From contig CBFDEM010000058.1 in assembly GCA_965603825.1 (NCBI GenBank), forward strand, positions 310,001 to 374,000: 64,000 nucleotides of DNA, given 5' to 3'. Position 1 is the stretch's first letter. Each line of letters begins with the position of its first letter. Shown here one piece after another: positions 8,089-35,213 of this stretch. Both the position numbers and the translations under genes were made by a program. The notes beneath the pieces were generated by a model. The model made no database searches. It was not told the origin of the DNA and saw only the letters and a list, made by a program, of their open reading frames with translations. The DNA is from Blepharisma stoltei ATCC 30299 (Eukaryota > Protista > Ciliophora).

Positions 8089-8330
8089 AGAATTTTTCAC
8101 ATAATTATAAAGCTAATAAATTATAAAGAATTTATAATAGAAAATAATAGTAATGAGTTAAAATTGAAACTTTTGCCAGCTTAAAATTAACGTTTACTAA
8201 CATCTAAAAATTATGAAGTTATTTGCTTCTGAAAATAAACTTTATATAAATTAATCTTTCTTTTATTCTGTTTTACCTCTTTATGGGCTATATAGCTAAA
8301 ATTAATTGTTTAATGTAAATTAATAAAAGA

Positions 8331-11300
8331 ATGTCAATCTTCCAAGACAACAACTGAAGAGAGATAAATATTGATGGAAAAACTCATAACACAAACTTTA
8401 TTTATCATAATAATTTTATTCGTTCTTCTAGATACACTTGACTTACAGTGATACCGAAGAACATTTTCGAGCAGTTTCAAAGTCCAGTGAATTTATGATT
8501 TTTATATATTTCTCTTTTACAATTGGCTGCAAGAAATATTAACCCCAATGACTATTGGACAACTATAATACCTCTTTCAATCAATATCTTATTTGTTTTA
8601 ATTAAAGAAGCTTATAATGATTATCATAGAGGCAATGATGATTCTACTGTAAATTCAGTGGAATATCTCGTATGAAATGGCTCAGAATTTGAAAAAATAA
8701 AAAGTGGGCAAATCTCTGTAGGGAATTTTATTATTTGCCAGAATGAAGAAAGGGTACCTGTTGATATGCTTCTCCTTGCATGCGGGCGCGGATTAAATTC
8801 ACTTTCAGTGGATATTTCATCAATTGTAGGGATTAAAAATTTGGCAGAAAAATATCCAGTCCAAGAAATTCAGCGACTTTTTAATTCAAATTTGGATTAT
8901 GAAAATTTATTAAGAAAATTAGTCGGAAATATGAAAGTTGAAGAGCCACATGAAGACACTGCGAAATTTCAAGGAAAAATCAAGCTGAATGGATTTCCTA
9001 AAGCTGTTGATTTAACCATAGATAATTTGATACTAAAAGGAAGTGTTTTATATGCGAATTCATTGACATTAGGACTTGTAGTATATGCAGGAAAAGAAAC
9101 AAAAGTTGACATCAATATAAAAGATAATAATCGAAAAGTATCTAGTATGGAAAAGCTTGTTAATGAAATGGTAATTTTTATTTTACTATTGCTGCAGCGA
9201 ATAATTATCGCTGCTGTTGTTTTGAATGAAATTTATAATCAAAGGATTTCTTATATAGATATTTTTGAAAATTATTTTTCTTTTACTATGCTTTTTTCTA
9301 ACGTAATTCCTATTATGATTTATGTGACTATGTCTATCATCAGAATTTTTCAGTGTAAACGAATCCAAAATCTGTTTAAAGGAAAAATTCTATTTAATAC
9401 TGAAGATATTAATGAAAATTTAGGTCAGGTAGAGTATATTTGTGCGGATAAAACTGGCACTTTAACTGAAAATAATTTGCGATTAAAAGCCTGCTATGTG
9501 GATAAAAAAGTCTACACAAGTGATGACAGCTTCATCCCTGAACAAAATTCTATACTAAGCCTAGACCAAAGAGAAATATTCCCAACAACAAATTTCGAAA
9601 AATATATCCAAGACACTGAATCCTTAATCTATAAAATTAAAATAGATTTACAAAGAAAAAATGATACAACTATTTTGTCTTTTTTTCTTAAATGTTTGGC
9701 TTTATGTAACTCACTTGTTTCTGAGGAGCATAAGTATTATGGAGCCTCAGCCGATGAAACTACTTTGGCCGATGCTGCTTCTAAGCTTGGATATGTACTT
9801 AGATTTAAAAACAATGCTTTTTGTGAGCTTGAAATTGATGGGCACCTAGAAAAATACGAAATCATTGCAGAAAAATCTTTTAATAGCAAAAGTAAAAAAT
9901 CAAGGCTGCTTATTAAAAGGTGTAATGAAGGGGATTATATTTTATTTGTAAAAGGCTCTGCAGAATCGATGCTCCATATATTTGAAAATCAGCATGACAC
10001 AATCAATGAGATCGAAGAAAACATCAATGGATTCGGAAGAAGTGGACTGAGAACTATGGTCCAAGGCTATAAATTTATCAGTCTAAAAGAGCTAAAAGAT
10101 TTCAATGGCAAAATAAAAATTGCAAATAGTTTTTCGATTAATCATGAAGAAAAAATAGAATCTGCATACAGAGATCTAGAAAAAGGGTCCAATCTCTTAG
10201 GGATCACAGGGATATCTGACGAAATTTCCCCTGAAACCTTGGAAACTATTGAATCATTAAAAAGGGCTGGAATTAAATTGTGAATCTTAAGCGGGGACTC
10301 AGAAGGAAGCTGTCTATCAGCTGCTCTGAATTCAGGAATAATTAGATCTGAAACTACCATTGTGAAGCTAAAAAAGCAAGTCTCAGAAATTCAGCTAAGA
10401 CGCGAATTGCAAAATGCTATAAATTTGTATATTTATCATACAGACATGTGAAGCCTACACAAGAGAAACATTTCGATGGGAACTAACCTAAGAGCTTCAG
10501 CTGAGAATAGCTTGGTGGAAAGTGAGTTTATGGACGATTCTAGCAATAACGCATCACCTCGTCCTGAAGACAAGATTGGATATAGCTTAAAAAGTTCTGG
10601 GACAAATAATTTTCAAAATTTAGAAAATGAAGCAAAATCTTATAATAATACACCACACCCAGGTTCTGACGAAAAATCATGAGAAAAGTTAAATATAAAA
10701 AGCCAAGGGACTCCTCATCCGAATCAAGATGAAAATGTAGGTTTCCCCTCACCTTTTAGGAGATTGGGAAGAATTGATAACTTTAGAACAAGATTTTTTA
10801 ATTCTACAATAACCCCTGAGTTAGTGAATTTTTCTGTGATTTGTGATAGAGTGACATTTAGAACGGCATTACAGTCTCCACATACGAAGAGAACACTTTC
10901 TATTTTACTATTTGCAGCCAAATCTGTGTGTTTTCATGATTTTTTACCAAATGATAAAGCAGACGCAGTTAAATTAATTAAGGAAAATTTTTCTTGGAGA
11001 CCAGTCGTGCTTTCAATTGGAGATGGAAATAATGATATCCCCATGATACAATGCTCTGATATTGGAATTGGCCTAAAAACTCAAGCTGAATATTTATCAA
11101 ATTATTCTGATATTTTAGTTGACCATTTTCATTACCTTCGAGACTTACTGTTAGTCCATGGGCATTGGAATTATTCTAGAATGGCAAAAAGTGTATTATT
11201 AGTGTTTTATCGAAGCTTTCTTTTGTCAATAATGATTTTCGGCTATATTTTTACTTCACAAATAAAATCAGTTTCAATATTCGACTCTGGGCAATTAATA

Positions 11301-14300
11301 GGGAGTGAAATTGTGTTTTCTTCAATAGCGATTATATGACTAGGGATTTATGATCAAGATATTGATATTATGAAAGCTAGGACTTCATCTAAGCGTTATT
11401 CTGAAGGGTTTCTATGCAAGCACATGGATGGAGTAAAACTGCTAACATATTTTTTCTATGCTTTTTTTCAAGGGTCTATAGCTTTTGCGTTCGTTTTAGG
11501 TTCATTTTCGTATTTTATTGATGGCTCAGGGCATCCTGAAGATTTTCAAGTTATTAGCATGACTCTTTATATAGTCTTTAACTTGTGCATTTATTTCCAG
11601 GTTTATCTTACTTATGAAAATTTTAAATGAAGCTATTTAATATCGTTTATAATATCAAGCTGCACGCTCTTAGGCTATGTTATTTTTATATCAAGTGATG
11701 ATATTTTTCCATATCAGCAATATGTAGGTATTTCTAATGAAATTTCTGGATCACTATTATTGTGAATTTTAATTTTTACTATTCCTATAATATCTACATT
11801 TGTGACATTTTTCTTTATAAAGATTTATTGAAAATTCACTGAAGAAATGCAAAAGCAAAATAAAATTAATGAAACTAGGAAAAAACTAGTTACAAAGCAG
11901 AGATTTGATCGCTTAGATAAATATTCAGAGTGTCTAGAAAATGCATACAGAGTTTACACACAAATAAAGAGGCAGTTTCAAGACGGGTATGAAATGAAAC
12001 AATTTTCGCTTCACTTTGCATTTTCTTATATAGAAGAAAAATATCAGGAGTATTTTTTATTCCAAAATTTAGCTTTATTAAGAAAAATAATTCTTAGCGT
12101 ATTTTTAGCTTTGATTTTATGAACCCTATTAGAGGCGATTTTTGTTGATGGACTAAATAGCATTACTTATGTGAGAGTCGGATTTACATTTGGGTTTGGG
12201 ATTTTATCTATGACATCATATTCAAATCACTTTAGAAACCATTTCAAAGAATATATAATCGCTGTTATTCTTGGCTCTGCTTTAGGGAAATTTGTATTTG
12301 AAATGACCTTTAATGCTGTTGCTATAATGATAACAGCATTTTTCCCATCAATAACTTACTCCATATTAAATGTCGACTTTTTGCTAATCACAATACTAAA
12401 CTCAATAAACTTATTATTATTCCCAGTTTCCCTCATAAGAAGTTACCTCTCTGACATTTCTCATAGTGCCCAATATATATCTTTAGTTTCAATCCAATAC
12501 CTAATTTTTTCGATTGCTATAGCAGTTTCATGTGGAATTGAAGGCTATTTTTTCGAATTTTCAAGGCGCTCCGAATTCAAACTCCTACGAATCGTCGAAA
12601 ATGGAGTCGAAAAAACCCAGGAGATTCTTAGCCATCTCCTCCCTGCATTCGTGAGAAATAGAGTAAAAAAAGGAGTCAGATACATAGCAGAAGACCAAGG
12701 GACCGTAACAGTCCTTTTTTGTGATATTTGCGACTTTGATAAAATTTGTAAAGAATATTCCCCAGTTGAATTAACTTCATTTTTAGACTCTTTATATCAA
12801 ACTTTTGACCAGCTATGTGATGCTACTGGAGTAACCAAAATAGAAACTGTAGGAAAAACTTATATGGCTTGTGCTGGATTTAGAGATAGTGACATTGAAA
12901 TGACAGAAAATCTGCAAAAAGTTTCCCATGCGAGAAGAGCTATTGAGCTAGGTTTGGCTATGATAAATAGAGTAAAAGATATAAGGCTATCTTATGGTGC
13001 TAAATTGTATGTAAAAATTGGAATAAATAGTGGCCCTGTCGTTGCTGGAGTTGTAGGGTACCATAAGCCACAATTTTCATTAGTGGGGGATACTGTAAAT
13101 ACTGCTTCTCGTATGTGCTCTACAATTTCAATACCTAACCAAATCCAGATTTCTAGATCTACTTATAATCTGATAGGTGATAAATTAGGCCTTTCTTTTA
13201 TAGCTGAAAGTGTCGAAGCTAAAGGAAAAGGAATCTTGCCTACTTATTATGTCTATGAGGACCCTAATGAGTTAGAAAATGCAAGCCCAACTCTGATTTC
13301 AAGCGTTTTAAGATCCTCCATAAGAGCTCAATCTCTCATGGATATCATGAATAATCCTTCTACCAATGAAACAAACCCTTTATTATCTACAACTCATATA
13401 GAAAGCCCTACAATTGATAGAACCCATTCTATTATGAGTAAGCTAGATTTGAGGAAAACTATTGAACTATTTGCAAGAGATAACTCAATGCTTGCAGAAA
13501 CTTTAAATGTTTTCAATTGCAAATGGGCTGAAACAGACAAGCAGAAAAAATATAGAATTGCCAAGCTTGAAGCTTCATTTTTAGTTGACTGGTCAATCTT
13601 ACTGATAGCTCTAATAGTTTACTTTTTACTATTGATTATAGCTGTTATGGAGTATATTTTTGCTGATAATTTAGCAAATCTCGCTGTAGTGATTGGCAGG
13701 GTAATTGACTTTTTGGCTTTTCTCACCATATTCACTCTTCATGAAAAATTATTTTTATATCGAGAATTCAGTTTGACTAAAATTGGAGTTTTAATATGGG
13801 TTATTATAACTGTAGGATTTTACATATTTTGGGACTTAGAAATAGAAGGCACAATGATTGATGTGGAAATAATGTACATCGTTTTAATACTCAACTATGC
13901 AAGCGGCTGCAGTTTAGGCTCTGTCATATGAATTTCCTTGCTTTTCTTTATTGTTTGCATCCTTATGACTCTATATGCTTCAGATAAAAAATCAGGCATC
14001 CAAAACATAATTTTTATTATAGGATTTTCTTTATTAAATACAATCACAATTTTTAAAAGGGACCAAAAAGAAAGGATAAATCATAACATCCAGCTTTTAG
14101 CTTCCAAAGAAATAGAAGAAAATAACAATTTGCTTGGGCAGATGATGCCTCCCGACGCTTTGAGTAAAATGAAAGAAGACAGAAACATTACTGATAGGCT
14201 ATTTCAAGTGACACTTTTATATGCAGATATTGTTGGATTCACATCATGGAGCTCTGACAAAACGCCTCATGATGTGGTTGAAATGCTGTCAAATTTATTT

Positions 14301-14762
14301 ACAAGATTTGATAGAAAATGTGTAGAGCATAATGTTTATAAAGTCCATACAATAGGAGATTGCTATGTAGTTATGGGATATACAGGGACTGAGAGAAGAG
14401 ATCCTACCAATGAGTGTATGAATGTCATCAGCATGGCCCAAGATATGATCAGAATTATTCATCAGATAAATGAAGAATGCAGCTCTGAGTTAAATATGAG
14501 AATAGGCATTCATACAGGAGAAGTTATTGCAGGGGTGATAGGGACAAATATTGTGAGATATGATATTTATGGGCCTGATGTGCTTTTAGCTAATAAAATG
14601 GAAAGCGGAGGGGAACCTGGAAAAATCAATATAAGTGAAGCTACAATGAGTATCCTTGAAAGAGGCTGGGAAGGAGCATTCACTTATACTTTCAACAAAG
14701 ATATAATCGCCAAAGCTATTGACAGGACTTTAAAAAGCTACTTTTTAACGTCCACTAATTAA
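8331..14762 (+). CDS. Bifunctional P4-type ATPase / guanylyl cyclase (alveolate-type GC), 2143 aa, no intron needed
   Basis: One frame across 13 TGA codons. P4-ATPase motifs: NFIRSSRYT..PKNIFEQF, DKTGTLT, SIGDGNND, LLVHGHWNY. Two class III cyclase domains: KIETVG...GDTVNTASR and ADIVGF...TIGD...ANKMES. Confidence 0.95.
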
Positions 14763-20993: not shown

Positions 20994-22211
20994 ATGGCAT
21001 CTTGGAACCTATCATCTTCACAACGTGCTAAAGACACGATAAACCCTATCAGAGAAACAGTAGCCACCATTCTTCTTCCTACAGATTTTCATCTCCCCAC
21101 TTATTCCTTAGCCCTAGGTGATCCTTCAGTGTTTCCTGATTTCGCTGTGAACCCTATTTTCACAAGAATCGCTCAAGAAAATCTTCTGTCAGGAACTGGA
21201 AATGGCTACTGTTTAGCAGCAGGACCTAGGCCAGCCCGTGAAGCATTAGCAAGACAATTTTCTTATGAAAATATTCAGCTTAGTTGGGAAGATGTAATCC
21301 TTGATATCGGTGGAAGCGGAGCAATTCATACAGCCATGCAAGTATTTTTAAACCCAGGAGACAATATTCTAATCCCAGCCCCTGGCTTTCCTCTTTATAA
21401 GTGTATGGCAGGCAATTTAAGTGCAGAAGCAAGACTATATTCATTAAGACCTGACCATGGTTGGGAAATAGACTTCAATGACTTAGACAGACTAGTTGAT
21501 GAAAGGACAAAATTGCTAGTCATCATAAACCCATCAAACCCTTGTGGAAGCGTTTTTACAAAGGAGCATTTATTAGAAATTTTAGATTGGGCAGAAAGGC
21601 ATAAAATCTGTATTTTAGCTGACGAAGTCTATACAGGAATGAGCTATGGGAAGCCTCACATCCCAATCGGATCCTTAACTGATGAAGTCCCTGTTTTTAC
21701 TATTGGTGCTATGAGCAAAATGTATTTGGTGCCTGGATGGAGATGTGGCTGGCTTATTGTCTATGATAAACACAATAAATGTGCAGAATTCAGAGATGCG
21801 ATATTAAAAGTAAAAAATATGCTTTTGCATCCTGCTCCTTTTATCGCGAACTCTATACCAGCAATTATAGAACAAACTCCAGAAAACTATATGAGTGAAG
21901 TTATGCAAAAAGTTAAGGAAAGAGCTGAACTTGTGTACCAAAAAATTCAAGAAACTCCAGGATTATCAATGCAGATGCCTGAAGGAGCTCTATACTGCAT
22001 GATTTCTATAGACTTAGAAGCTTTTGAAGATTTTGGAAATTCAATTATTTTTGCTGAAAAACTAGCAAGGGAACAAGGAGTCTTGGTGCTTCCTGGAGAA
22101 AGTTTCATGAGTCATAGAGCCTTTAGAGTTGTTCTATGCCAGTCAAGAGCTGTTCTTGAAGAGTGCATGGACAGAATTAAAAATTTCGCAGCAGCACATC
22201 ATAAAAAATAA
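20994..22211 (+). CDS. TAT: Tyrosine/aromatic aminotransferase (class I PLP), 405 aa
   Basis: LGDPS.FP, NGY, PAPGFPLY, INPSNPCGSV, ADEVY, PLP-lysine motif GAMSKMYLVPGWRCGW, LPG..F..RV. Confidence 0.92.
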   Translation: MASWNLSSSQRAKDTINPIRETVATILLPTDFHLPTYSLALGDPSVFPDFAVNPIFTRIAQENLLSGTGNGYCLAAGPRPAREALARQFSYENIQLSWEDVILDIGGSGAIHTAMQVFLNPGDNILIPAPGFPLYKCMAGNLSAEARLYSLRPDHGWEIDFNDLDRLVDERTKLLVIINPSNPCGSVFTKEHLLEILDWAERHKICILADEVYTGMSYGKPHIPIGSLTDEVPVFTIGAMSKMYLVPGWRCGWLIVYDKHNKCAEFRDAILKVKNMLLHPAPFIANSIPAIIEQTPENYMSEVMQKVKERAELVYQKIQETPGLSMQMPEGALYCMISIDLEAFEDFGNSIIFAEKLAREQGVLVLPGESFMSHRAFRVVLCQSRAVLEECMDRIKNFAAAHHKK

Positions 22212-22288
22212 TTAAAAGTTGCATTAACTGCATTTATTGCTCGAAAAATATAAATATAAAGCATTTTTAAAATTATAAAATAAATTAG

Positions 22289-23425
22289 TTAATAATAAGT
22301 TGTTATCATCAGCTTTCTTGTATTTTCAATCAAGCTATTTAAAAACGACTCAATAGAAGACCCACCAGTTCCCTTAGTGCTGCCTCCTTGACTTGGCTTG
22401 ATAATATATTGATAAGCAAGTTTGCAATGCGTTTTTCTAAAATTAGCAAATTCTTCTATCACTGAATTCCATTCGTCAACTGCATCCAAATCAACGACAG
22501 TTTTCCTGATATCTTTTGGCCTGCTTTTTTCAACGAAAGCGATAAAGTCTCTATGCTCTTTTTTCATATATGGGAAAATCCCTGATAAAAATGTATCATT
22601 AGAATTCAAAGTAAAAATTGCATCGATAAGCCGAACCAAGGGGCTTTGGGCTGCAGTTGACCCCATTAGCTTTAGAGGAGTCTCAGAAACTCCTTCATAT
22701 ATTACACCGTCAAAAGACCCTAAGTATCTTCTGAAGCCAAAATAAAATACATTTGGATCTACCCTTTGAAAGACCAATGACAAAGCCTTTTTCATATCTT
22801 TTAATGTATCAACAAAAATTTTTAGTGAATTTTTGACGTCTTCCTCATTTTTGGTTTGGATTCCATTATAAAATGTCGGAATTGTTTCAATTATTGCATT
22901 GCCCAAGTACTCAATATAAGTCCCACAGTGGTAAAAGAAGGTCTCGTCATCAGTCCCTGAGAAAGTAAACAAGCTATCAATATTATCTGGGTGGAATTCC
23001 TTCGATTCATCTTTCAACTTCCAGTTTTGGAAATTCGTGGAAACAATTGAAATCATAGGGGCACGATCTAAATGATTGCTTAACCTGCAAAAAGGAACTG
23101 AAATATTTGATGGAATTCTCTGAGAAGGAGTGCTTGAATGCCAATAATAAGCTGAAGCAAGATACGCATGAAGTAGAGTTGCGAGCTCAATTTGATCATT
23201 ATCGTCTATTATTAAGGATGGATCAAACCTAGGCAGCTTCCTTATTTGGCTTGCTAAGTCTGATGGGTTGTCCTGGATTGACTTGACTAAGTTGTAGTGA
23301 GGCAAAAGTGCTTCAGATGTTGGAATGCTCAAAGGTGGAATTGACTGGACAAAGGATTGGATTGGGAGAGACTGAAATGATAAGAGAGAGCTCGGGAGGG
23401 TGCTGAAAAGCCTTGAAAAATTCAT
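22289..23425 (-). CDS. IDO: Indoleamine 2,3-dioxygenase, 378 aa (probably the 5-hydroxytryptophan-preferring isoform)
   Basis: AYYW, P.I....NW, FSGTDDETFF, DPNVFY..FR.YL, GSTAAQS loop, proximal heme His in FRKTH..AYQYI, GTGG motif; residue 131 is Asn. Confidence 0.93.
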   Translation of the reverse strand: MNFSRLFSTLPSSLLSFQSLPIQSFVQSIPPLSIPTSEALLPHYNLVKSIQDNPSDLASQIRKLPRFDPSLIIDDNDQIELATLLHAYLASAYYWHSSTPSQRIPSNISVPFCRLSNHLDRAPMISIVSTNFQNWKLKDESKEFHPDNIDSLFTFSGTDDETFFYHCGTYIEYLGNAIIETIPTFYNGIQTKNEEDVKNSLKIFVDTLKDMKKALSLVFQRVDPNVFYFGFRRYLGSFDGVIYEGVSETPLKLMGSTAAQSPLVRLIDAIFTLNSNDTFLSGIFPYMKKEHRDFIAFVEKSRPKDIRKTVVDLDAVDEWNSVIEEFANFRKTHCKLAYQYIIKPSQGGSTKGTGGSSIESFLNSLIENTRKLMITTYY

Positions 23426-23809
23426 TTATACACTTGATTGTTTGTCGCGAATAAATCGACCAATTTTCCTCGCTTGAAGATCACATTTTTATTATGTTTA
23501 TTATTTTAGATAAATTAGTTGCCATTTTTCCTCATCTGAAGATTAGACTTAAAAATAATTATTTAAATAGATAATTTAGTTATTTAAATCTTTATATTTC
23601 TTATATTAAATTATTTGAAAGGAAATTAGATAGCTTATATTAGTATATATAAAGCTGTATTGGTTTACTAATTTTTTAATTTCTGACTTTAGTTTACTTT
23701 TAACGTATGAGTACTTTGCTTTAGTTATCTTCTCTAATTATAATATTATAACTTAAAATTAATCGATCTTACTTATCTAGATTTCATCTTATTTATTTAA
23801 TAGAAAATA

Positions 23810-26800
23810 TTATTCTATGCCCAAAATTTTATTGATCAAAAAATTTGATTCTTGAGACCCTGTATGCATAATCATTTTTCTGAATAATGATTTTTCTTTG
23901 TTTATCAACTCATAAGGTGTTCCAACCTCTTTGCAGCTCCCTTTATTCATAACAATTATTCAATCAGAATCAACAATAGTCCTCAGCCTATGAGCAACAA
24001 TTAGAAGTGTGCTGTCTCCCAACATTTTTTTAATCTGATTTTGTATGAATTTATCAGTTTCAGGGTCCACGTTCGCAGTTGCTTCATCCATCATTACAAT
24101 TTTATTTTTCCTGATAAGAGCTCTCGCTAAGCATACAAGCTGCTTTTGGCCTGATGATAAATTTCCTCCTTCACCAGTTAGGAGTGAATTGATTCCATTT
24201 GGGAGGGATCTGGCTAACTTATTAAGCTTTGTTTCCTTTAGAATTTTTAAAATTTCTTCTTCTGAGTGCTCATGGAATGGGTCAATATTATCACGAAAAC
24301 TTGCCAAAAATATGGTAGGTGACTGAGGGATTACAGACATTTGCTTTCTTAACTGATGAAGTCCTGCATTCATATAATCTTGGCCATCAATATAAATAGT
24401 TCCTGAAGAAGGATTTATGAGCCTAAAAAGAACTTGCATTATTGAAGATTTTCCAGCCCCAGTCCTGCCAATAATTCCAACTTTTTGTCCAGGCTCAATA
24501 GTGAATGAAAGATTTTTCAGTGCATAAGGATAGTTTTCCCTATATCTCATATATAATTCTTTTACTTCGATTTTTCCTTTATCTATTATGAAGGGATTTT
24601 CCGATTCAAATTTTCCTTCCTCTTGAATATCAGCATACTCAATTAACCTTTGTGGAGAAGTCATTAAATTTTCTACCTCAGCTACTGTTTTGGCCCAAAA
24701 AGTAATGACTGTTGCCATCACAATTGATAAAGAAATGCTCATTGCCCCTAAACTTGAATTTATATGATCCTTATATAATACTAATATGACAACATTGAGA
24801 ATGTTTATGAACAAGGCACCAAGTTCTGTATATCCTTGATATGTTTTTAACACAACGTGGTAGCTTAGTAAGGATCTTTCACTATGAATTATTGCATTCT
24901 TCATGTCATCAAGAAATTTATTTTGGAGATTTAGTGCCCGAATGGTTACCAAGCCATTGATTGTAGAATTTGCTAAAGAAAGGATTGGACTTTTAGAAAT
25001 CAGCTCAATTTTTCGTAAGTCTTTTGTTATGGGTACAACTTTTTTGGCGATGATAAAGACATATATAAAAAAAATAAAAATAACAGCTATATTGGGAGGA
25101 GCAACAATAGATAATACAATAATGTTTCCCAAAACTGTTGCAGACTGAATTACGGCTTCTGAAAAGTATCTAAGAAGAACTTCATCAGTCATTAAGGTAT
25201 CTTTCGAAAACCGATTTATCATCCTTCCAGTAGGATTTTTATCAAAAAAGACACTTTCTGTCAGGGTCATTCCTTGTAAAGCTTTATTATGGATTCTCTC
25301 ACCAGCCATAAGCAGCCCTATGCTCATTATATAAGATCTTGCGAATGTTAAAACATAATTCACACCAACTATTATTGCAAAAATTCATAAATAGAATGAG
25401 TCAGTTTGATCATCATCTGATGCTTTTGCCCATAATGCCAGCCACCAAATTACAGCTAGGTATGATACTTGCCCAGCAGCCACAATTAGCATGACAATTA
25501 CTATAACTATCCATGATCCGAATCCATATCATAAATATTTATAGTATATTTTCCAAGGTGTAGACCCCTCTGCACTCTCTTCTTCTTCAATTGCTATTTT
25601 ATCTTTCACTTCCACTTTTGCGTTAGTTTCTTTTGCTGCATCTTTTTTATCCTCATCTTCTTCATTATCTTGCTCAAGAAGCTCCCCTACAATGTGAAAA
25701 ACATCTTCTCTTGCTCTTAACTCTTCATAGTTTCCAAAAAACAACTGATTTCCACCATCCAACACCAAAATTTTGTCAGCTTGAGAGATGTAGTGAATTT
25801 GGTGCGTTGCAAGAATAACAGTTTTATCTTTTAGATACTCTTTGATGCAGGTGTTAAATAGATATGAACTTACCTCAGCATCTACTGCACTTAAAGGATC
25901 ATCAAGCAAGATTATTTCTCGGTTGGTATAAATTGCTCTGGCTAGGCTTATCCTAGCTTTTTGTCCGCCACTTAGGGTAATCCCACGATCACCTATCACA
26001 GTTTCATCCCCATGCGCAAAACTTTCTAAATCTTGTTCAAGAGAGCAGACTTTGATTATTTTATGATAGAGCTCTTCACTATATTCCAAGCCCATCAGGA
26101 TATTATCTTTGATACTGCCTGATATAATTCATGGATTTTCTCCAGCATAAGTGATTTCCCCATTAATTTTCATTTTTTCACCGTATGTTTGGATTTCTTG
26201 TAATAAGCCCATAAATAAGCTACTTTTTCCGCTTCCAACCTGCCCTACAACCATTAATAGCTCGCCTGGTTTTATTTTAAAATTAATATTGCAAAGTGTT
26301 GGCCTAGGAGTTTCCTCCGTCAATCTTGGGTTTTCATCATCATAACTTGAAGAGACTTGGTCATATCTAGGTGATTTTGCATAGTCATTCTGATTTCAAG
26401 AATCATTTCATGAAAAACTTAGATCTTTAGCTACTACAGAATATTCTTCATCACGTTCATAAATAATATTCAATTTTTTCTTCATTAATAATATATCTGT
26501 AATTCTTCTCATAGAAGATTTAAATAAAAATAGCATGAGAACTCCGCTTGCTCCCCAATTGGAAATTAAGCTATGAGCCATCATCAGCACAGTAACTCCT
26601 GCAAACACAACTCCTGGCTCTAGAGAGTGTCCCATAGAAACATAAATTAAAAATGTCACAAAAAGCACAAGGCCAGTTCCACCATTTCCCATTGATCTAT
26701 TTAACGATGAATAAGTTAACCCTTTCAAACATTTACTTATTTCTTCTTTCCTTTTTTCAAAAATCAAATCTAAATAAGGACTTTCCCAACCATATAATTT

Positions 26801-27616
26801 TACAATCCTGATCCCTTCGATTAAGTTTGTGATCATTTTAATACGTGAATCACTGACTAAAGCAATTTTTCCTCGGTATTTGCCATTAAGGACACTTAAA
26901 AAATATATGAACGGATAATGAAAAATAATAACAATAAGCCCAATGATACCTGCTGGCCCAATATAAAAGCCTAAGATTAAAAACGATCCGATAAGGAATG
27001 GTACTGCTGCAAATAAATAAACAATATAGACAATGACATCCATAAATTCCAACTCAGAAACTATTACATTAGCCAATTTCCCTTTTATATTACCTTGGGA
27101 TAGCTCCATATTTGATATCCCAAAGAGTTTATCATAGATTAAACGAGGTACAACTGATTTCAGCCTTATTACTAGCATAGTCACTCTAAAAATGCATAAA
27201 TTTCACATATAATATGATATAAGGGCAACTGCTCCATATGCAATTGTGTAGCCGGCTCCTTCATAAGCTTCTGCATTGCTATCATTCATATATCTAGCTA
27301 AATATATGACAAGTATAGCTTGAATTAGTCCGAAACTTTGTGACAAAATACCTGGGGCAAAAATTTTAATTACTTCTCACCCTATAACTCTTAAGAGCGC
27401 CCGTTCAAAACTCGGCTTTTCCTTTTTCAGTTCTTTTTGTCAAGATTCTTCTATTAATTCAAGATCTTTATCAAACCGGAGGCGTTTTGGGATTTGAGCT
27501 AAATTTTCTGTGGTTGCCTTTTGCTTTCTTCAAAAAGATATTAGAGGAAATCCTCAGCTCATAACTAGATCGTTGAAAATAGTTGCCTTATCATATAAAA
27601 ATTCTGGAGTTTCCAT
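23810..27616 (-). CDS. ABCC/MRP-family (ABCC4-like) full ABC exporter, 1268 aa
   Basis: One frame across TGA codons from ATG 27616 to TAA 23810-23812. NBD1: [30 protein letters not shown]2: [24 protein letters not shown]. Two TMDs, no TMD0. Confidence 0.94.
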
Positions 27617-28572
27617 TGATGCTAGATGCGTATAAAACTTATACTTAAGAAAATTATTAATCAAAGAAAATTGGGAATTTCTGCTCAGATGTGAAATCCT
27701 ATAGGTAAAAATTAGCCATTCAGTTAAGACTATGATATTCCTAATATTTATTTAAGCTTATTAAGTATAAGGCAGATCTGCAATAATTATTACTTATAGT
27801 ATGGTGCCATTACAGGCAGGTATTAAAATCTTATGGAGTATTTCTTTTTAATTTCAAGTTAAATTAATATTGTTTTAGGATAAATTTAAACTGCTTGCTC
27901 TGTCTTCATGATCGAACAAGCCTTTTTGCTTGTTTAAGAAGGAGAGTGTTCAATAGCTATGGATAAATAAATGTATAGGATGAATTTAAGCAGTAATTAA
28001 AAATTATCAGTGCATACCTTTAATTCCACTTAACCTTAGACAAATTTTCAATCGTTATTTGGAAGTTTTGTAAAACAGTTTATTGGCCCTAATATTTATA
28101 TTTAAATTTAATAGATTGATGATAATGCTATGTCCATAATAAATTCAAGCTGCTTTTCTTTATAGTTTAACAAGGGAAAATCTATTTAAAATTTTTTATC
28201 GAGCTGCAATTTTAACGTGAATTTAAAGTTTATACTATAAAATATATAGGATAAATTGAAGCATCCAAATCATAGGCTAATATAACGACTTCAAGCCAGA
28301 AGCCTGCTATTAAAGTAGCAATTTAAGTGTTTATCTTAATAAATTTTAAATTGAAAGATTCAATAATTAAGCAAAAATGCATCTTGAATCTCAGTATTTT
28401 CCAAAAGATTTCATAAATATATAAATCTTAATTTTGCCACTCATCAAAAATTTTCATAAATAATTTATTAATTATATTTATAAATGCAAAATAGACATAT
28501 TAGCATTAAATAAAAGTCAAGAAAGGCTATAAAAAACCCCAACTTTTTCATATTATATATATTTTAATTATT

Positions 28573-29706
28573 CTATGAAAAAGTTTTACCTTGGAACGAG
28601 AGACTTAGTGAAGAATTTGTTTTTTCGTGTTCTGATGTTCGCAGAATCCTCACGCTAGAATTTTCTTTTGCTTCTCTCTCCACGATACTTTGAGGAATCA
28701 GGGTATAGACTTCCACTTGTTCTTCATAGCCAACTATTTCTGGCTCTTTACAATCTTCAATTAGACTGGATGATGGAATTATTTTGTCCACATCCCCTTG
28801 CTTATAGTTTGAAAAGAGTTTAATTTCATGCGACTCGTTATATAGCTCAGAGCTAGTTAATTGGCTAGTTGCTAATGGATTTGAACTACTATGGGTGGGG
28901 GTAGAATTTTCTTCTGAGTTTTCTTTGTTTTTGTTTTCAGTACTCTGACTATTTCATTGATTTAATGATTTAACGTCCGGACTCCCAGGAGTGCTTTCCC
29001 CATCTCTATAGCTTGTGTTTCTGCTATTCGAATTAGAATCAATGCCATTTTTAGATATTATTTTTTCCTTGTCTTCTCTCTCATGAATATATTTATTATG
29101 CTCTTCAAAGTTGAGATCAATAGCCGATTTTCGATTTGTAGTTGGAGGAGAAGCATCTCCTGTAACTACTTCATATAATAACTCACCCGTTTCGTTTTTC
29201 TTAAAAGCTTTTTGAAGGACTTTCAAGATTATAAAAGATAAAATTTCTATTGCAGCCCTAAAGACAATAAAGCAATAGGTGGAGAAAAATGCAATAGAGA
29301 GCCCTGAATCTTTGCTGTTGTTAATTTTATCATCAAGATGAAGACAAAAAATAAAGCCGATTATAATCAATGAGGAGTATCCGATAAGAAGCAGCCATCC
29401 TATAATTTGGGATAAAAGTTTTGATCGGCAAACTATTCTGTGCTTTTTAAATATACTTTGTATTAACATCATAGAGAAATCTATTAAGAGGACTATCCCA
29501 GATACAAATAAATATTCTGGAATGTAGCTATTTTTGATAAGATTGCTATTGTGAATTATAGTGTAAATTGCAGTAGCAAGGCAAGTAGTAGCTAAAAGTA
29601 GTGTAAATATTGGAAATATAAAAGATCCGTAGTAATTCATCGGCTCAGGATTTGAGGATAAGCCTGCATCTGGATTATTTTGAGAAAGGGAAGAATTACT
29701 TTCCAT
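28573..29706 (-). CDS. Orphan membrane protein, 377 aa (4 N-terminal TM helices plus disordered C-tail)
   Basis: ORFs 28954-29706 and 28573-28791 share a frame across TGA 28954-28956; four hydrophobic segments. Confidence 0.8.
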
Positions 29707-30031
29707 TAATTATTTGAAACTAGGAGAAGGCATATTGAATAAGCAACTCTTATTTAATATCAAAATAAAGATTTAGCTTAAATCTATGAAGATTAAAACA
29801 GATGTTTTATATCATAAATGATCATGAAATAATATATATTTAATAATTTAGCTGCTAACTTATGTGCAAAATATGTGTCTCTAGCATGATAGATAATAAT
29901 TATAATTACGAGTATAAATATAAATATAAATAGGACGAAATAGATGAAAAAATTGAAGATGAAGATATTATGTGTTTCTTAAATAAACTTATTCTTTTTC
30001 TAAAGGTTAAAATTTTCAAAGAAATATTATT

Positions 30032-30964
30032 TTATATTAAGCTAAAGGCCTTCAAAGCTGATTTTTTCATCTCGGTGAAGTTTTTAGTCTTGAAATAAGC
30101 AGGCTGATATGAAGAAAGGGTAAAATCCATACTGAGGATTTTTTTAGTGTCCCAACCAATAAACTCACATTTATCTTTTTTTACATGAAAAATTTCTTTG
30201 CAAGACCCAAGGATACCTGCACCCAAAATTTTATCGCCTACGATTCCAAATTCTATTGAGTAAAAATAAATTTTTGCTAGTTTCGCAATGTCCTCTTCGC
30301 TTGCTCCCAGAGATTTCTTCCCAATTTCTTGAGAAAATTCAGCAATTTCTTCGTTTCCGAAGAGAGGGACATGCCCCATGAGCTCATGCACAACGTCAGG
30401 CTCAGGCGAGTAAAAAGGAACCGAAATGTGGCGAATATATCTCGTTGAGAAAAACACTCTATAAGCTAGCCCGTATAAAAAGGACCTAGCATTGATCATT
30501 CCTCCAACCGGAATAAGTTTGAAGCCAGTTTTTGTCCCTAATCAGTTGTTTATTTTTGAAAACTGTGGTATCTTTTCTCCTGTATAAATTCCCAAATTTT
30601 CTAACTCTTGGAGGTTTAACTTATGCTCATCACAAGCATAAAGATAATGAAGCTCTCTAAGCCTTGCGTAAAGGAGGCTTCAGGTTTTATTTGCTTGATC
30701 TGGATAGAAAACATCAGGAACTTCTGAATTAACTGAGGAGCTGCAATTTCTTACAACGCGAAGCCAATTCATATAGTCAATGTCGTCTAAGCCTGGATAA
30801 GAAATTCCAAGCTTTTCAAAAAAATTTTCGTAAGATTTATCTATAGTATCAAGATCAGATCGGGATCTTGGGTACCAGAAACTTTGGTGGAACGTTGCGA
30901 AAAATTGCTTTGTTGATCTGAAACTTAAGCTTCAAATCACCATAAATATTTTTTTCTCAAACAT
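30032..30964 (-). CDS. Biopterin-dependent aromatic amino acid hydroxylase, catalytic domain only, tryptophan-hydroxylase-like (start at 30964 or 30943)
   Basis: WYPRSRSDLD, KT(W=TGA)..LY..L, IPQF, TGF.LIPVGG, YIRH..P.YSPEPDVVHELMGH (Fe His ligands), YFYSIEFG (Fe Glu ligand), GAGIL, YQP.YF. Confidence 0.92.
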
Positions 30965-31868: not shown

Positions 31869-33848
31869 TTACCTTGCTCCAGAGCTATTCCAGTCAATAT
31901 TAAAAGATGAAGACTTCTGCGCTAATTGGACAACGACACTAAATATAAAATAAACAAATCTATTCACATAATTTCTTGGAGTTGCCACTGAAATTTGTCC
32001 AGCTCTTCTTCTCCCATGGATAACAGCTTTATAAGCAAGTTCCATATACTTTCAATAGTTAAATTCTGTCAAGAAATCAATGATTCCCATCGTATATATG
32101 TATTTTGGGTCAAGAGACTGGATATATCTCGCTGAGCTTTCATCACAATTCTTGCAAATTGCAAGCAGCAAGGAGTAATCCATTAGTTTGTGACTATACA
32201 AAAACTTTGAGTCGTTTACAATGATATCGACAATTCGAATTTTATCATCTTCAGAAAGCTCAAAAATATGCTTAAATTTAATTAAGTCCAAATCCTTCAG
32301 TGGACCGCTCGGTTTACCTTTATCGCAAGCTGTGCGGCCGACTGTTGAACCTTTGATATCAAACGTGAATAAAGGTTCTACCCCATAGAGGACATTTTGC
32401 ATAAGAATAATGTCTAGAGAAGTTACACCAGGAACTTTTATTGTATAGAGTCCATAAATCCTGCACAACATGGAATGAGGATTATTTTTTAAATGAATAT
32501 GGTAGTCTTTGAGGATTTTTCGCATAGTTTTCTTTTCCTTGCGCTTAATTGTTTTAATAGAAAGCCTATTGTCACTTGTAAACAAGAAAAAACTTCCGGA
32601 TTTTCCTGAGCTTTCGTCAACTTTAAACATATTTTCTTTATTCTCATATGGATCAAGGCTCATTAATGCATCTTCATATGATAAATTATAAATTTCCCTT
32701 ATGTCTTCAAAAATATCAGGTGCAAATTCTTTTATTACAACTTGTGGCAATTTTGAGTCGGCTATTCCCCAAATTTTGGCTGTGTCTTTTAAATAGTGAA
32801 AAAGCTTGTGCTTCTCCACTTTTAAATAGGGATTTCCATCAGTGAATTGGGTTTTTGAGTATTTTCTTCTCATAAATAGCCCATGCAGACTAGAAAAAAT
32901 ACAATAAGCCAGTTCTATATTTAATTTCCCAAATACAACAGCTGCAATTGGCAAATTTCAAGCATCATCAGCAGTCATATCTATTTCTTCGCGCTTAAAG
33001 ATTGCACATTTTTTAATTTTTTTCCAAAATAAAGGATCGCATGTACGAATGATCCCTAAAAAAAAGCCAGAGGACAAATAAGCTACAAGGGCAACTGTGT
33101 CTATATCAAAATTTACGTCATTAGACTTTTTCGAAAAATAGCTTAGGGTAGGCCACATTCATAGCAAAATAAACGCAGAAACATATAATATATGCCTTAT
33201 TAAATACTGCCGGCTGTGATCTGTAATCATTTTCAGACCTCTTGTGAACCTCCATGCCGCATAAATTACAGAAATCAGCCCTATTCCAAAAAAAACGACC
33301 AATAATATTTCAATAGCTCCAGATACTGCAATTTCGAGTCTATCTTTGTTTTCTGCAATGCATCTTGATATAAATTGGTTTTCCCAGTTGACATAGGAAA
33401 CAAAATAAGCTGTCGTCAAAAAAGTGGCGATATGGTAAAACTTTTTCCTTTTCTGTCCAGAAATAAACGGGTTGTACAAGGTGACAATTAGATCTAAGCA
33501 TATTGCAATGTTATAGCATAAACTTCCGACAATCCCAATTGATAGCATAACTTGATTAATTCCACACAGAATCAGAGAAATTGTTTGATGCCCAATTGTG
33601 TAGCCCAAGTGGTCAGCCAGTCCTGGGAGTAGTTGATAGATCGATATAACCGACTCAGTATCCCATACAAAAATTATGCTGTGGAAAGACATAATAATTT
33701 CGCATATGCTAAGACAAACAATCAGCCCTGAAGGATGTTGTCGAAGCTCTTTTGAGTGTAAAAAAGTAAGTACCACTAATCCGGAGAATAAAATATTCGC
33801 GCAGCCCAATGATGTGTATAGAGCTAAATCAGTGCTCTCTAATGTCAT
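31869..33848 (-). CDS. GPCR-PIP kinase fusion (cAMP-receptor-like 7TM plus phosphatidylinositol-phosphate kinase), 659 aa
   Basis: Three ORFs form one frame across TGAs. 7TM part: LRQHPSGLI, ILCGINQ, DLIVTLYNPF. PIPK part: FAPDIFEDIR, GKSGSFFLFT, IKTI, DIKGS, LKDLD, MDYSLL, GIIDFL. Stop is TAA at 31869-31871. Confidence 0.92.
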
Positions 33849-33854
33849 AAAAAT

Positions 33855-35213
33855 ATGCTAAAAATCGAAGCTGAAATTGTTTATTTTGAACACTGCATCC
33901 AATGTTCCTCCCACCGTTGGTGTACTAACCATGACGAAGAAAAATACAAATCTTACTTCAACGAGTGCAGAAATGCAATTGCTTCAAATTGCCGAGGGGT
34001 TAATGTAGTAGAAAACCAAATCCCATTAGGATTCAACACTAAGTTTATCGACATAAGTGAGCCGCTCAGGCCTGGAAAAAGCCATTTCCCAAGAATTGGG
34101 GCCTTTGAGGTTTATTTCAGAGGCAAATTAATCTATTCCAAATTGCAGACTGGGAAATGGCCATCTGCAACAAGACTTGCAGGTATGGTTAAGGACCTTA
34201 TGGAAGAAAAGAAGCAGCCAGTTCCTAAAGAAAAAGCCTTTAGCATAAAAAAGAGAAGATCGCAGAGCACCAAGCGAAGGCGCCCTGTAACTGATATGAA
34301 GAAAAAGATCAGAAAGAAGCCAAAAAAGGCGAAAAAAATTAGACATTTAGAAGAAGACTCCCATTTGACAAGTCAAAATGAAGAAAAACAGCAGGAGTAT
34401 GCATATAAAGTTGACAATTTTAAGATAAATAATAAAGAATTCCACGAAGACAGCCCGAAAGAGGGAACCTTGAACTTTGAAGAAAAACCCACAATAAAGG
34501 ACAAAAGCCCTAAAAATAACCATTTTTTATTGCCACAGACCACTAAGCCAGAAAGCAGTGCAAAGCATGATGAAAGCCACTCAAGTTCTTCATCAGGAGT
34601 TTTTCAGCCTCCCCAAGTCCCAAGAGGGCATCATTCTTTTAACGGCCAGTTGAAACAAAGTTCAGATGAATCTAATAGCGAGTACAATGAAGACTTTGAC
34701 GCAGGAGAAGAAGAAGCTCATGAGTCCCCTCACCAATCAAGCCATAGCTCAAGTCGCAAGCAAAGCCATGAGTCTAGGCACGAGTCAGATCATGAATCAG
34801 ACCAGGATTCAAAGCATGAATCAGACCATGAAGAATACGAGCAGGATTATGAGCAAGATTATGAGCAAGAAGACTACGAGCAAGACTATGAGGAGGAAGA
34901 AAACAAAGACGAGCACCCCAAGCGAGAAGTCACCAAAAGCTATAACGTCGACATACCAGTCGGAATGCCAGCTAAGAAAAAGATTACTTATCAAAACGTG
35001 AACTCCAACGACTCAGAATTCTTTATTCTTTCATCACATCCTGAGTTCATGGCTGTAAAAGATGAATATGTTACCATTAAACGAGGCATGAAAGAAAAAT
35101 TCCAACTGAAGTTCGAGCCAGTTGACGAGCCTGGAGAAAGGACTTATTATCTTTATATTGATAGAGATGGAGAACCTTGGGAATGCATCCAGATCAAAGC
35201 TGAATATCAATAA
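33855..35213 (+). CDS. Rdx (SelW/SelT-like) thioredoxin-fold protein with low-complexity linker and C-terminal Ig-like domain
   Basis: EHCIQC (CxxC) and PRIGAFEV....LIYSKL..GKWP Rdx signature; beta-rich C-terminus. Confidence 0.8.
   Translation: MLKIEAEIVYFEHCIQCSSHRWCTNHDEEKYKSYFNECRNAIASNCRGVNVVENQIPLGFNTKFIDISEPLRPGKSHFPRIGAFEVYFRGKLIYSKLQTGKWPSATRLAGMVKDLMEEKKQPVPKEKAFSIKKRRSQSTKRRRPVTDMKKKIRKKPKKAKKIRHLEEDSHLTSQNEEKQQEYAYKVDNFKINNKEFHEDSPKEGTLNFEEKPTIKDKSPKNNHFLLPQTTKPESSAKHDESHSSSSSGVFQPPQVPRGHHSFNGQLKQSSDESNSEYNEDFDAGEEEAHESPHQSSHSSSRKQSHESRHESDHESDQDSKHESDHEEYEQDYEQDYEQEDYEQDYEEEENKDEHPKREVTKSYNVDIPVGMPAKKKITYQNVNSNDSEFFILSSHPEFMAVKDEYVTIKRGMKEKFQLKFEPVDEPGERTYYLYIDRDGEPWECIQIKAEYQ
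34765..34895 (+). repeat. Coding tandem repeats (12-nt units encoding HES(D/R) and EQDY)
   Basis: catgagtc/catgaatcagac and gagca(a/g)ga(t/c)ta(t/c) units within the Rdx gene. Confidence 0.7.

Follow-up and report, generated by a model that had tools for sequence, protein, structure and literature searches.

We suggest that four neighbouring genes of Blepharisma stoltei form a partial biosynthetic cluster for the mating pheromone gamone 2, and that this cluster came together around an old TAT locus within the Blepharisma lineage. We consider this somewhat probable; as the best explanation, it rests on gene identities, proximity, residues and history. The genes lie in a 64,000-nucleotide stretch (the window) of contig 58 of strain ATCC 30299. 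To our knowledge, the IDO step is the only one in the gamone 2 pathway with an assigned gene. The chemistry of gamone 2 was solved in 1973, and ciliates have no other known mating pheromone that is a small molecule (PMC10892320, PMC9542385).

The window was read with UGA as Trp, as stated for B. stoltei (PMC9942806), and its long open reading frames result from this code; proteins containing UGA were searched piecewise or via a database identifier. Each of the genes below runs uninterrupted from ATG to TAA or TAG, and an intron-free reading suffices. An aminotransferase of the TAT family (20994..22211, plus strand; 405 aa, PF00155 with E 7e-55, PLP-lysine motif at residue 242) converges on the gene for indoleamine 2,3-dioxygenase IDO-I (22289..23425, minus strand; 378 aa, PF01231), with 77 bp between them. 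Also on the minus strand are an ABCC/MRP-type full transporter (23810..27616; 1268 aa, two PF00664 and two PF00005 domains) and a short pterin-dependent aromatic amino acid hydroxylase (30032..30964; 310 aa, PF00351, or 303 aa from the alternative start Met8 at 30943). The four genes span 9.97 kb, and the other three all lie less than 8 kb from IDO-I. The preliminary description had named these genes and their positions amid an otherwise functionally unrelated gene order, and both points are borne out: all four are intact and matched by the families given, and the flanking genes encode a flippase/guanylyl cyclase, a Rab, kinases and a PIP5K. Missing from that description was a gene separating the transporter from the hydroxylase (28573..29706, minus strand), whose 377-aa product has four predicted TM helices followed by a low-complexity tail, no Pfam match and an Atlas recognition below threshold; it interrupts the group and is not known to belong to the pathway.

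The window dioxygenase and the published B. stoltei IDO-I (UniProt A0A286T8B9) are the same protein, with 100% identity and Asn131 included (codon 23033..23035, minus strand). This match to the gamone-2-linked isoform supports the earlier pairing of the gene with the dioxygenase step, and the earlier placement of the DNA in Blepharisma is right as well. Among the four IDOs of the genome, only IDO-I has Asn131; the site is Gln in IDO-IV and the outgroups, with His129 and Glu132 in the IDO pair on contig 15. We take Asn131 to be the substrate-determining residue of IDO-I, and its significance was reportedly described by Yuasa et al. in 2018. This exact protein is said to have been published as the gamone 2 enzyme that opens the ring to give 5-hydroxy-N-formylkynurenine, the step having reportedly been established from transcriptome data by Sugiura, Yuasa and Harumoto in 2017 and by Yuasa et al. 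in 2018. The title of PMID 29125937, as cited in PMC9942856, links a B. stoltei IDO with pheromone biosynthesis. Of the genome's IDOs, this 5-hydroxytryptophan (5-HTP)-linked enzyme alone has TAT and hydroxylase neighbours.

Genome comparisons used an assembly of 41.46 Mb in 64 contigs, the macronuclear (MAC) genome of B. stoltei being 41 Mb (PMC9942806). Proximity was judged post hoc against a hypergeometric null in which gene order is random and 45 of 25,711 genes belong to aromatic amino acid pathways; finding two or more of the 45 in the six genes closest to IDO-I then has P = 4.5e-5. The chance of TAT being adjacent to IDO-I (post hoc, random order) is 3e-4, that of an adjacent ABC transporter 4e-3, and that of a short hydroxylase within 8 kb 2e-3, or 2e-2 under a same-contig duplication null. 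The contig carries a second such hydroxylase at a distance of 248 kb (86% identical, Ka 0.07, Ks 0.31, under purifying selection); the duplication comprised the gene only (a 948 bp match without flanks), and there is no flanking synteny to decide which of the two is the parent. The gene-only duplication speaks for coincidence, in which a dense genome, fractionation after whole-genome duplication and a recent same-contig hydroxylase duplication produced the grouping: the duplicated gene would have about a 2% chance of landing within 8 kb, and the search was post hoc and covered the whole genome. The TAT adjacency, however, is independent of the hydroxylase duplication, and the genome holds two more pathway-adjacent pairs, an AADC-type decarboxylase with a hydroxylase (chance 7e-4) and fumarylacetoacetase (FAH) with TAT (1e-3). 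Chance is an unlikely source of the grouping beside IDO-I, and we give coincidence very little credence. The earlier proposal of a metabolic cluster stands in that at least three non-homologous genes are linked beyond chance, one of them (IDO-I) with a pathway role that we take from earlier reports; the reductase is outside, and we therefore call the cluster partial.

No link of the group is older or statistically stronger than that of TAT with the adjacent IDO-I. IDO-IV and the IDO of a second UGA=Trp species have a pseudouridine synthase and a cyclin as neighbours, and because this is the ancestral place of IDO, the IDO-I lineage was relocated beside TAT. On contig 21, in a duplicated block, the gene adjoining TAT is a broken IDO, and its closest grouping is with IDO-I (90/92). 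Ks between this block and that of the window is 1.55-2.3 for five gene pairs and 3.1 for one, which fits WGD-beta, a genome duplication with Ks of about 1.8 that is confined to Blepharisma (PMC13685798).

The contig 21 block, where FAH adjoins TAT and the broken IDO, also lends itself to a different reading, namely that the genes form a neighbourhood of aromatic amino acid metabolism with IDO-I as its sole pheromone-specific member, TAT serving housekeeping Tyr/Phe catabolism as part of an ancestral FAH–IDO–TAT block. The hydroxylase would then supply 5-HTP or Tyr generally, and gamone 2 would be made through an unclustered short hydroxylase and a KAT-like transaminase. In agreement with this, the window TAT is a slow-evolving, mainstream ciliate TAT, probably with a housekeeping role: its branch is short, no other copy is as similar to the TATs of ciliates that have a single one, and it is conserved in B. 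japonicum and transcribed there, a protein in transcriptome MMETSP1395 (presumably from a type I strain) being 97% identical to it. Its 67% paralog and 61% Stentor ortholog pass TIGR01265 (389 and 384 bits, cut-off 292), match TAT structures and score too low for the narrower TIGR01264. The genome also encodes three kynurenine-aminotransferase (KAT)-like proteins, which would be natural rivals for a kynurenine-type substrate, and five short hydroxylases. One of the five, a sister of the window enzyme, is encoded on contig 27 at 175 bp from the genome's only AADC-type decarboxylase and points to other uses of the short clade. On the other hand, the neighbours belong to the 5-HTP-linked IDO-I and not to other IDOs, the hydroxylase is of the TPH-like type (see below), and HPPD, HGD and both canonical PAHs are all on contigs other than the window's. 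Phe/Tyr catabolic gene clusters comprise a hydroxylase, TAT, HPPD, HGD and FAH; the hydroxylase near TAT in the window and the FAH beside the duplicate TAT recall such clusters, but with the remaining genes unlinked to the window a Phe/Tyr catabolic cluster was rejected. We regard the neighbourhood reading as rather unlikely. Separately, the lack of UGA codons in TAT and IDO-I (P 0.024) was dismissed as a sign of high expression, since 17 of 70 open reading frames are alike.

The hydroxylase consists of the catalytic domain alone. Its Fe ligands (His193, His198 and Glu238) are intact and the substrate-binding Arg is present; the AlphaFold model (pLDDT 88) has the hydroxylase catalytic fold (TM about 0.85), and structure prediction with fold search confirmed this fold and did not tell TH, TPH and PAH apart. 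Phe234 occupies the position of PAH Trp326 and TPH1 Phe313 (numbering equivalence from PMC12171880). Trp is the residue at this site in the genome's two canonical PAHs and in 36/36 outside PAH-like matches, and Phe in three flatworm TPH-like proteins. At the position of TPH1 Tyr235 (PAH Leu248) it has Met156 and so lacks the Tyr of the TPH type. Its best NCBIfam model is TIGR01270 (271 bits versus 222 for the Phe model, all below cut-off), and the TPH model scores best for the short clade and the PAH model for the canonical PAHs. By its Phe234 and its model scores the enzyme resembles Trp hydroxylases more than Phe hydroxylases and is a candidate Trp 5-hydroxylase; the family and the Trp-type candidacy put forward earlier both hold, on the Phe at the PAH-326 site and TIGR01270 as top model. 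A single residue is insufficient to set the substrate specificity of a hydroxylase. Likeness to animal TPH1/2 (TIGR01270) extends to the fold, the Fe ligands, the Arg270 equivalent and the Phe at 313/326, whereas the window enzyme differs in having no ACT or tetramerisation domain, Met at Tyr235 and Gly at Ser349, and the short hydroxylases form a separate long-branch clade. Membership in animal TPH was rejected, the score being far under the family cut-off (271 versus 705 bits) and the tree placing the enzyme outside; at most, it may be a convergent TPH-like enzyme. The TPH-type site is shared with the four other short hydroxylases of the genome, and the short clade predates the window cluster and occurs unclustered on other gene-dense eukaryotic contigs.

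It may also be that only the hydroxylase and IDO-I cooperate, TAT and ABCC being bystanders from the block, a scenario that overlaps with the gamone 2 cluster and differs from it in steps 3 and 5 only. Judged by simple composition, the N-termini of both proteins are basic and hydroxylated with nearly no acidic residues and resemble mitochondrial presequences (residues 1-27 of the hydroxylase have low pLDDT), and that of TAT is not presequence-like. However, such N-termini are common to all AAAHs and IDOs of the genome, and the link that this scenario discards, TAT to IDO-I, is the oldest one; we think it improbable. Mitochondrial-like presequences were likewise rejected as special evidence, being common to all paralogs.

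If the gamone 2 cluster is accepted, a route can be proposed. The short hydroxylase would convert Trp to 5-hydroxytryptophan, as its active-site residues suggest, and IDO-I would open the ring to give 5-hydroxy-N-formylkynurenine. TAT could, on chemical grounds, then form the 2-oxo acid, whose N-formyl group would block cyclisation to kynurenic acid. Reduction to the lactate would fall to an unclustered 2-hydroxyacid dehydrogenase. The window has no 2-hydroxyacid dehydrogenase or MDH/LDH gene; the nearest candidates are two PF02826 genes on the same contig (404k and 408k, 63-67 kb away), and five MDH/LDH-family genes lie elsewhere in the genome. Export of the anion by the ABCC would be the weakest step. 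This protein has a TMD-NBD-TMD-NBD arrangement without TMD0, with a degenerate Walker B in NBD1 and a canonical one in NBD2, and is a weak candidate exporter; the genome's 75 matches to the ABC membrane domain correspond to roughly 38 genes, and another ABCC adjoins FAH on contig 24. Trypanosomatids, in which a broad-specificity TAT and an aromatic 2-hydroxyacid dehydrogenase yield excreted aryl-lactate (PMC4266777), share the logic of steps 3-5, but there the pathway is catabolic overflow of plain Tyr, Phe and Trp, has no hydroxylase or IDO step, and is not claimed to be clustered.

In weighing the cluster, we counted in its favour the identity of IDO-I, the TPH-type Phe, the chance of ~5e-5, the IDO relocation and the contig 27 hydroxylase–AADC pair. 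Counted against a dedicated cluster were the lack of a clustered reductase, the mainstream TAT, four more TPH-type hydroxylases and many ABC transporters, and also the KAT-like rivals, the older hydroxylase clade, the 86% copy and the interrupting gene. Fungal and plant clusters combine non-homologous enzymes of consecutive steps with a transporter, are built from relocated duplicates of primary-metabolism genes and are lineage-restricted. The B. stoltei group is similar in having candidate enzymes for consecutive steps and a transporter within about 10 kb, but it has no reductase, is interrupted by one gene and has no regulator that we could see.

The synteny comparison with Stentor proposed in the preliminary description covered two IDOs and one TAT in Stentor coeruleus; the arrangement is absent around all three, and the IDO and TAT loci of this species are separate. 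Sample SRR24908292 (UGA=Trp) yielded orthologous loci for IDO-IV, for the hydroxylase on contig 15 and for the TAT on contig 33, and none for the window locus; a JGI scan found no close relative, and the searches brought up no contig with this locus from a second Blepharisma species. A literature search found no description of the genomic neighbours of IDO-I or of a gamone 2 cluster, in agreement with the earlier view that the clustered pathway is undescribed, and no biosynthetic cluster of this sort in any ciliate.

Tentatively, a bolder proposal can be made, although we find it doubtful in its entirety: that this is the first ciliate cluster for a small-molecule signal, its four genes being co-induced in mating type II to make and export gamone 2, with a convergent ACT-less Trp hydroxylase and with the nearby dehydrogenases completing the route; that the contig 27 pair is an amine-making unit; and that the genus sorts hydroxylase paralogs into pathway neighbourhoods.

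For a pathway unsolved since the 1970s, the locus supplies candidate genes for three steps (hydroxylation, transamination and export) and directs attention to candidates for the reductase. These are open to testing, since RNA-seq already exists (PRJEB45374) and the enzyme assays are simple. If confirmed, the cluster would extend fungal- and plant-style pathway clustering to ciliates, would define an undescribed subfamily of short hydroxylases with probable Trp activity, and would make it conceivable that mating type II is switched as a unit at one locus.

Five intact open reading frames without introns fill the interval 20994-30964 of the window when UGA is read as Trp: an aminotransferase (20994-22211, + strand), an indoleamine 2,3-dioxygenase (IDO; 22289-23425, − strand), an ABCC transporter (23810-27616, − strand), a 4-TM protein of no assigned family (28573-29706, − strand) and a pterin-dependent hydroxylase (30032-30964, − strand). 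The preliminary description had named four of these, and all four are borne out as intact genes; its sole omission was the 4-TM gene. Because the sequenced strain, ATCC 30299, is of mating type I, the locus at the DNA level is not confined to type II cells.

The anchor of the grouping is the IDO, whose sequence matches B. stoltei IDO-I (UniProt A0A286T8B9) at 100% identity. Besides four intact IDOs, the genome holds a fifth that is broken. Asn131 is found in IDO-I only, with Gln in IDO-IV and outgroups, and with His129 and Glu132 in a pair on contig 15. Sugiura and colleagues are said to have reported in 2017 that IDO-I favours 5-hydroxytryptophan (5-HTP) and tracks gamone 2 production, and Yuasa and colleagues reportedly identified Asn131 and Glu132 in 2018 as specificity residues of IDO-I and IDO-III; those residue numbers agree exactly with the sequences here.

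We lean towards interpreting the interval as a partial gamone 2 cluster. In the proposed route, the window hydroxylase would convert Trp to 5-HTP; IDO-I would convert this to 5-hydroxy-N-formylkynurenine, a step already published; the aminotransferase, of the tyrosine aminotransferase (TAT) type, would yield the 2-oxo acid, the formyl group blocking cyclisation; a dehydrogenase encoded outside the cluster would produce the lactate; and the ABCC transporter might, more tentatively, export the product.

The grouping is real and not random, and its anchor is an enzyme already known from the pathway. In the assembly searched (41.46 Mb in 64 contigs, with the window on contig 58), where 45 genes were counted as belonging to aromatic amino acid pathways, the probability of finding at least two of them among the six nearest neighbours of IDO-I is about 5e-5 under a post hoc null of random gene order. 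The hydroxylase term alone becomes 2e-2 if that gene arrived by same-contig duplication, which is a point in favour of a coincidental grouping; we regard coincidence as very unlikely. A second neighbourhood occurs on contig 27, where the sole AADC-type decarboxylase of the genome follows 175 bp downstream of a sister short hydroxylase, on the same strand (locus sequences L041:7674-9125 and L042:300-1229; contig 27, 138.2-140.7k). In this hydroxylase, position 326 is Tyr and the conserved Glu286 is replaced by Asp; the pair is possibly a serotonin/dopamine-type mini-cluster. The pair favours genuine pathway-related gene order in this genome, but it also shows that such neighbourhoods need not concern gamone 2. 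The window could likewise be an aromatic amino acid neighbourhood in which pheromone specificity is limited to IDO-I, a possibility that we take seriously but consider rather unlikely.

The genome encodes nine members of the hydroxylase family: two canonical Phe hydroxylases (PAHs), which carry a regulatory region at the N-terminus and have Trp at PAH position 326; two further long and divergent enzymes; and five short enzymes without the regulatory and tetramerisation regions. Residues of note in the divergent long pair (contigs 36 and 57; L008 and L009) are Phe326, Ile331 and an Arg at position 379. In the window enzyme both the iron triad and the substrate Arg are intact, and Phe234 falls at the site of PAH Trp326 and Phe313 of the Trp 5-hydroxylase (TPH) TPH1, which two papers link to substrate specificity (PMID 11747434, PMID 11922614). 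Among 39 outside long-type matches, 36 have Trp at that site and three have Phe, the latter being flatworm proteins, two of them named TPH. In NCBIfam, the short enzymes match the Trp model best (271 bits vs 222 for the Phe model) and the canonical PAHs the Phe model, with all scores far under cut-off. The window hydroxylase thus probably works like a Trp hydroxylase, as judged from its sequence. Membership among animal TPHs was rejected, given these scores and a separate, fully supported clade of short enzymes. That clade takes in proteins from other gene-dense eukaryote contigs, on which no pathway neighbours surround the short-clade genes. Position alone marks out the window hydroxylase from its four short paralogs, one of which lies 248 kb off on the same contig (86% identical, Ks 0.31, Ka 0.07); the duplicated stretch between the two is the gene alone.

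The window TAT, one of four TAT-like loci, is the slow-evolving copy. It shares 60-64% identity with other ciliate TATs, and a B. japonicum MMETSP1395 protein matches it at 97%, a pattern that fits a housekeeping role. This leaves room for a second role, because protist TATs are broad in specificity and in trypanosomatids a TAT and a dehydrogenase give excreted aryl-lactates (PMC4266777). Three kynurenine aminotransferase (KAT)-like genes outside the cluster are competing candidates for the transamination. The contig-33 TAT (315-316k; L050:4-1203) has in-frame stops and looks broken; at the corresponding locus of a second UGA=Trp species, its ortholog is intact. The ABCC transporter is the weakest member, being typical of its family in a genome where ~38 genes carry an ABC membrane domain (75 matches).

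No reductase gene was found within the 64-kb window, and the cluster proposed in the preliminary description is hence at best partial, although its non-random grouping and its anchor stand. Candidates for the missing reductase, known by location, are two D-2-hydroxyacid dehydrogenase genes 63 and 67 kb past the hydroxylase (contig 58, 403962-404486 and 408121-408642); five MDH/LDH genes lie elsewhere in the genome. The configuration of natural gamone 2, reportedly L, would decide between these two families (PF02826 and PF00056). Contig 58 (847 kb) bears many genes of Trp-pathway type: besides IDO-I, the window TAT and the two 2-hydroxyacid dehydrogenases, there are two short hydroxylases (92.4k and 340k), a pterin carbinolamine dehydratase (167.2k), IDO-IV (201.9k), an MDH/LDH (743k) and a KAT-like aminotransferase (819k).

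The history of the block can be partly reconstructed. A position next to genes for a pseudouridine synthase and a cyclin is kept by IDO-IV and in the second UGA=Trp species, and on gene-order comparison is the ancestral IDO site. Contig 21 bears a duplicate of the window block, with Ks of 1.55-2.3 in five gene pairs and 3.1 in a sixth, in line with WGD-beta, a Blepharisma-specific event of Ks ~1.8 and ~112 Ma (PMC13685798). There, TAT, the broken fifth IDO and a fumarylacetoacetase follow side by side (757-761k; L032:7292-9967 and L033:32-1357). The broken IDO, with stops and frameshifts read as X, joins IDO-I at support 90/92. IDO and TAT are ordered differently in the two blocks, and some local rearrangement must therefore have occurred. 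Most simply, the IDO-I lineage would have relocated beside TAT ahead of the block duplication. The ABCC, 4-TM and hydroxylase genes are all absent from the contig-21 block, and the hydroxylase was either a later arrival in the window or lost from contig 21. A functional unit of hydroxylase and IDO-I alone has to be set against this older TAT-IDO association and seems quite improbable. On contig 24 (617-623.6k), a second fumarylacetoacetase and a full ABC transporter stand ~3 kb apart, perhaps as another remnant of that ancestral block. In Stentor coeruleus, a comparison proposed at the outset, none of these neighbours occurs at two IDO loci and one TAT locus within the sequence examined.

Two other genes in the window encode fusion proteins. 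The one at 31869-33857 (− strand), 0.9 kb away from the hydroxylase, joins a hydrophobic N-terminal part of receptor-like character to a PIP5K domain, and resembles the GPCR-PIPK architecture of oomycetes and Dictyostelium; the one at 8319-14762 (+ strand) has the GC architecture of alveolates, with a P4-ATPase-like N-terminus ahead of guanylate cyclase domains.

As a kind of system, the locus would, by a modest preference, be a eukaryotic metabolic gene cluster, in partial form. In the literature covered, mostly outside subscription journals, we found no biosynthetic cluster described from a ciliate, this grouping included. A genome-wide search with the kynureninase model TIGR01814 gave zero candidates, which prompts the question of where the products of the Trp-preferring IDOs go. 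Finally, the old question of the gamone 2 pathway is now directly testable on existing data.
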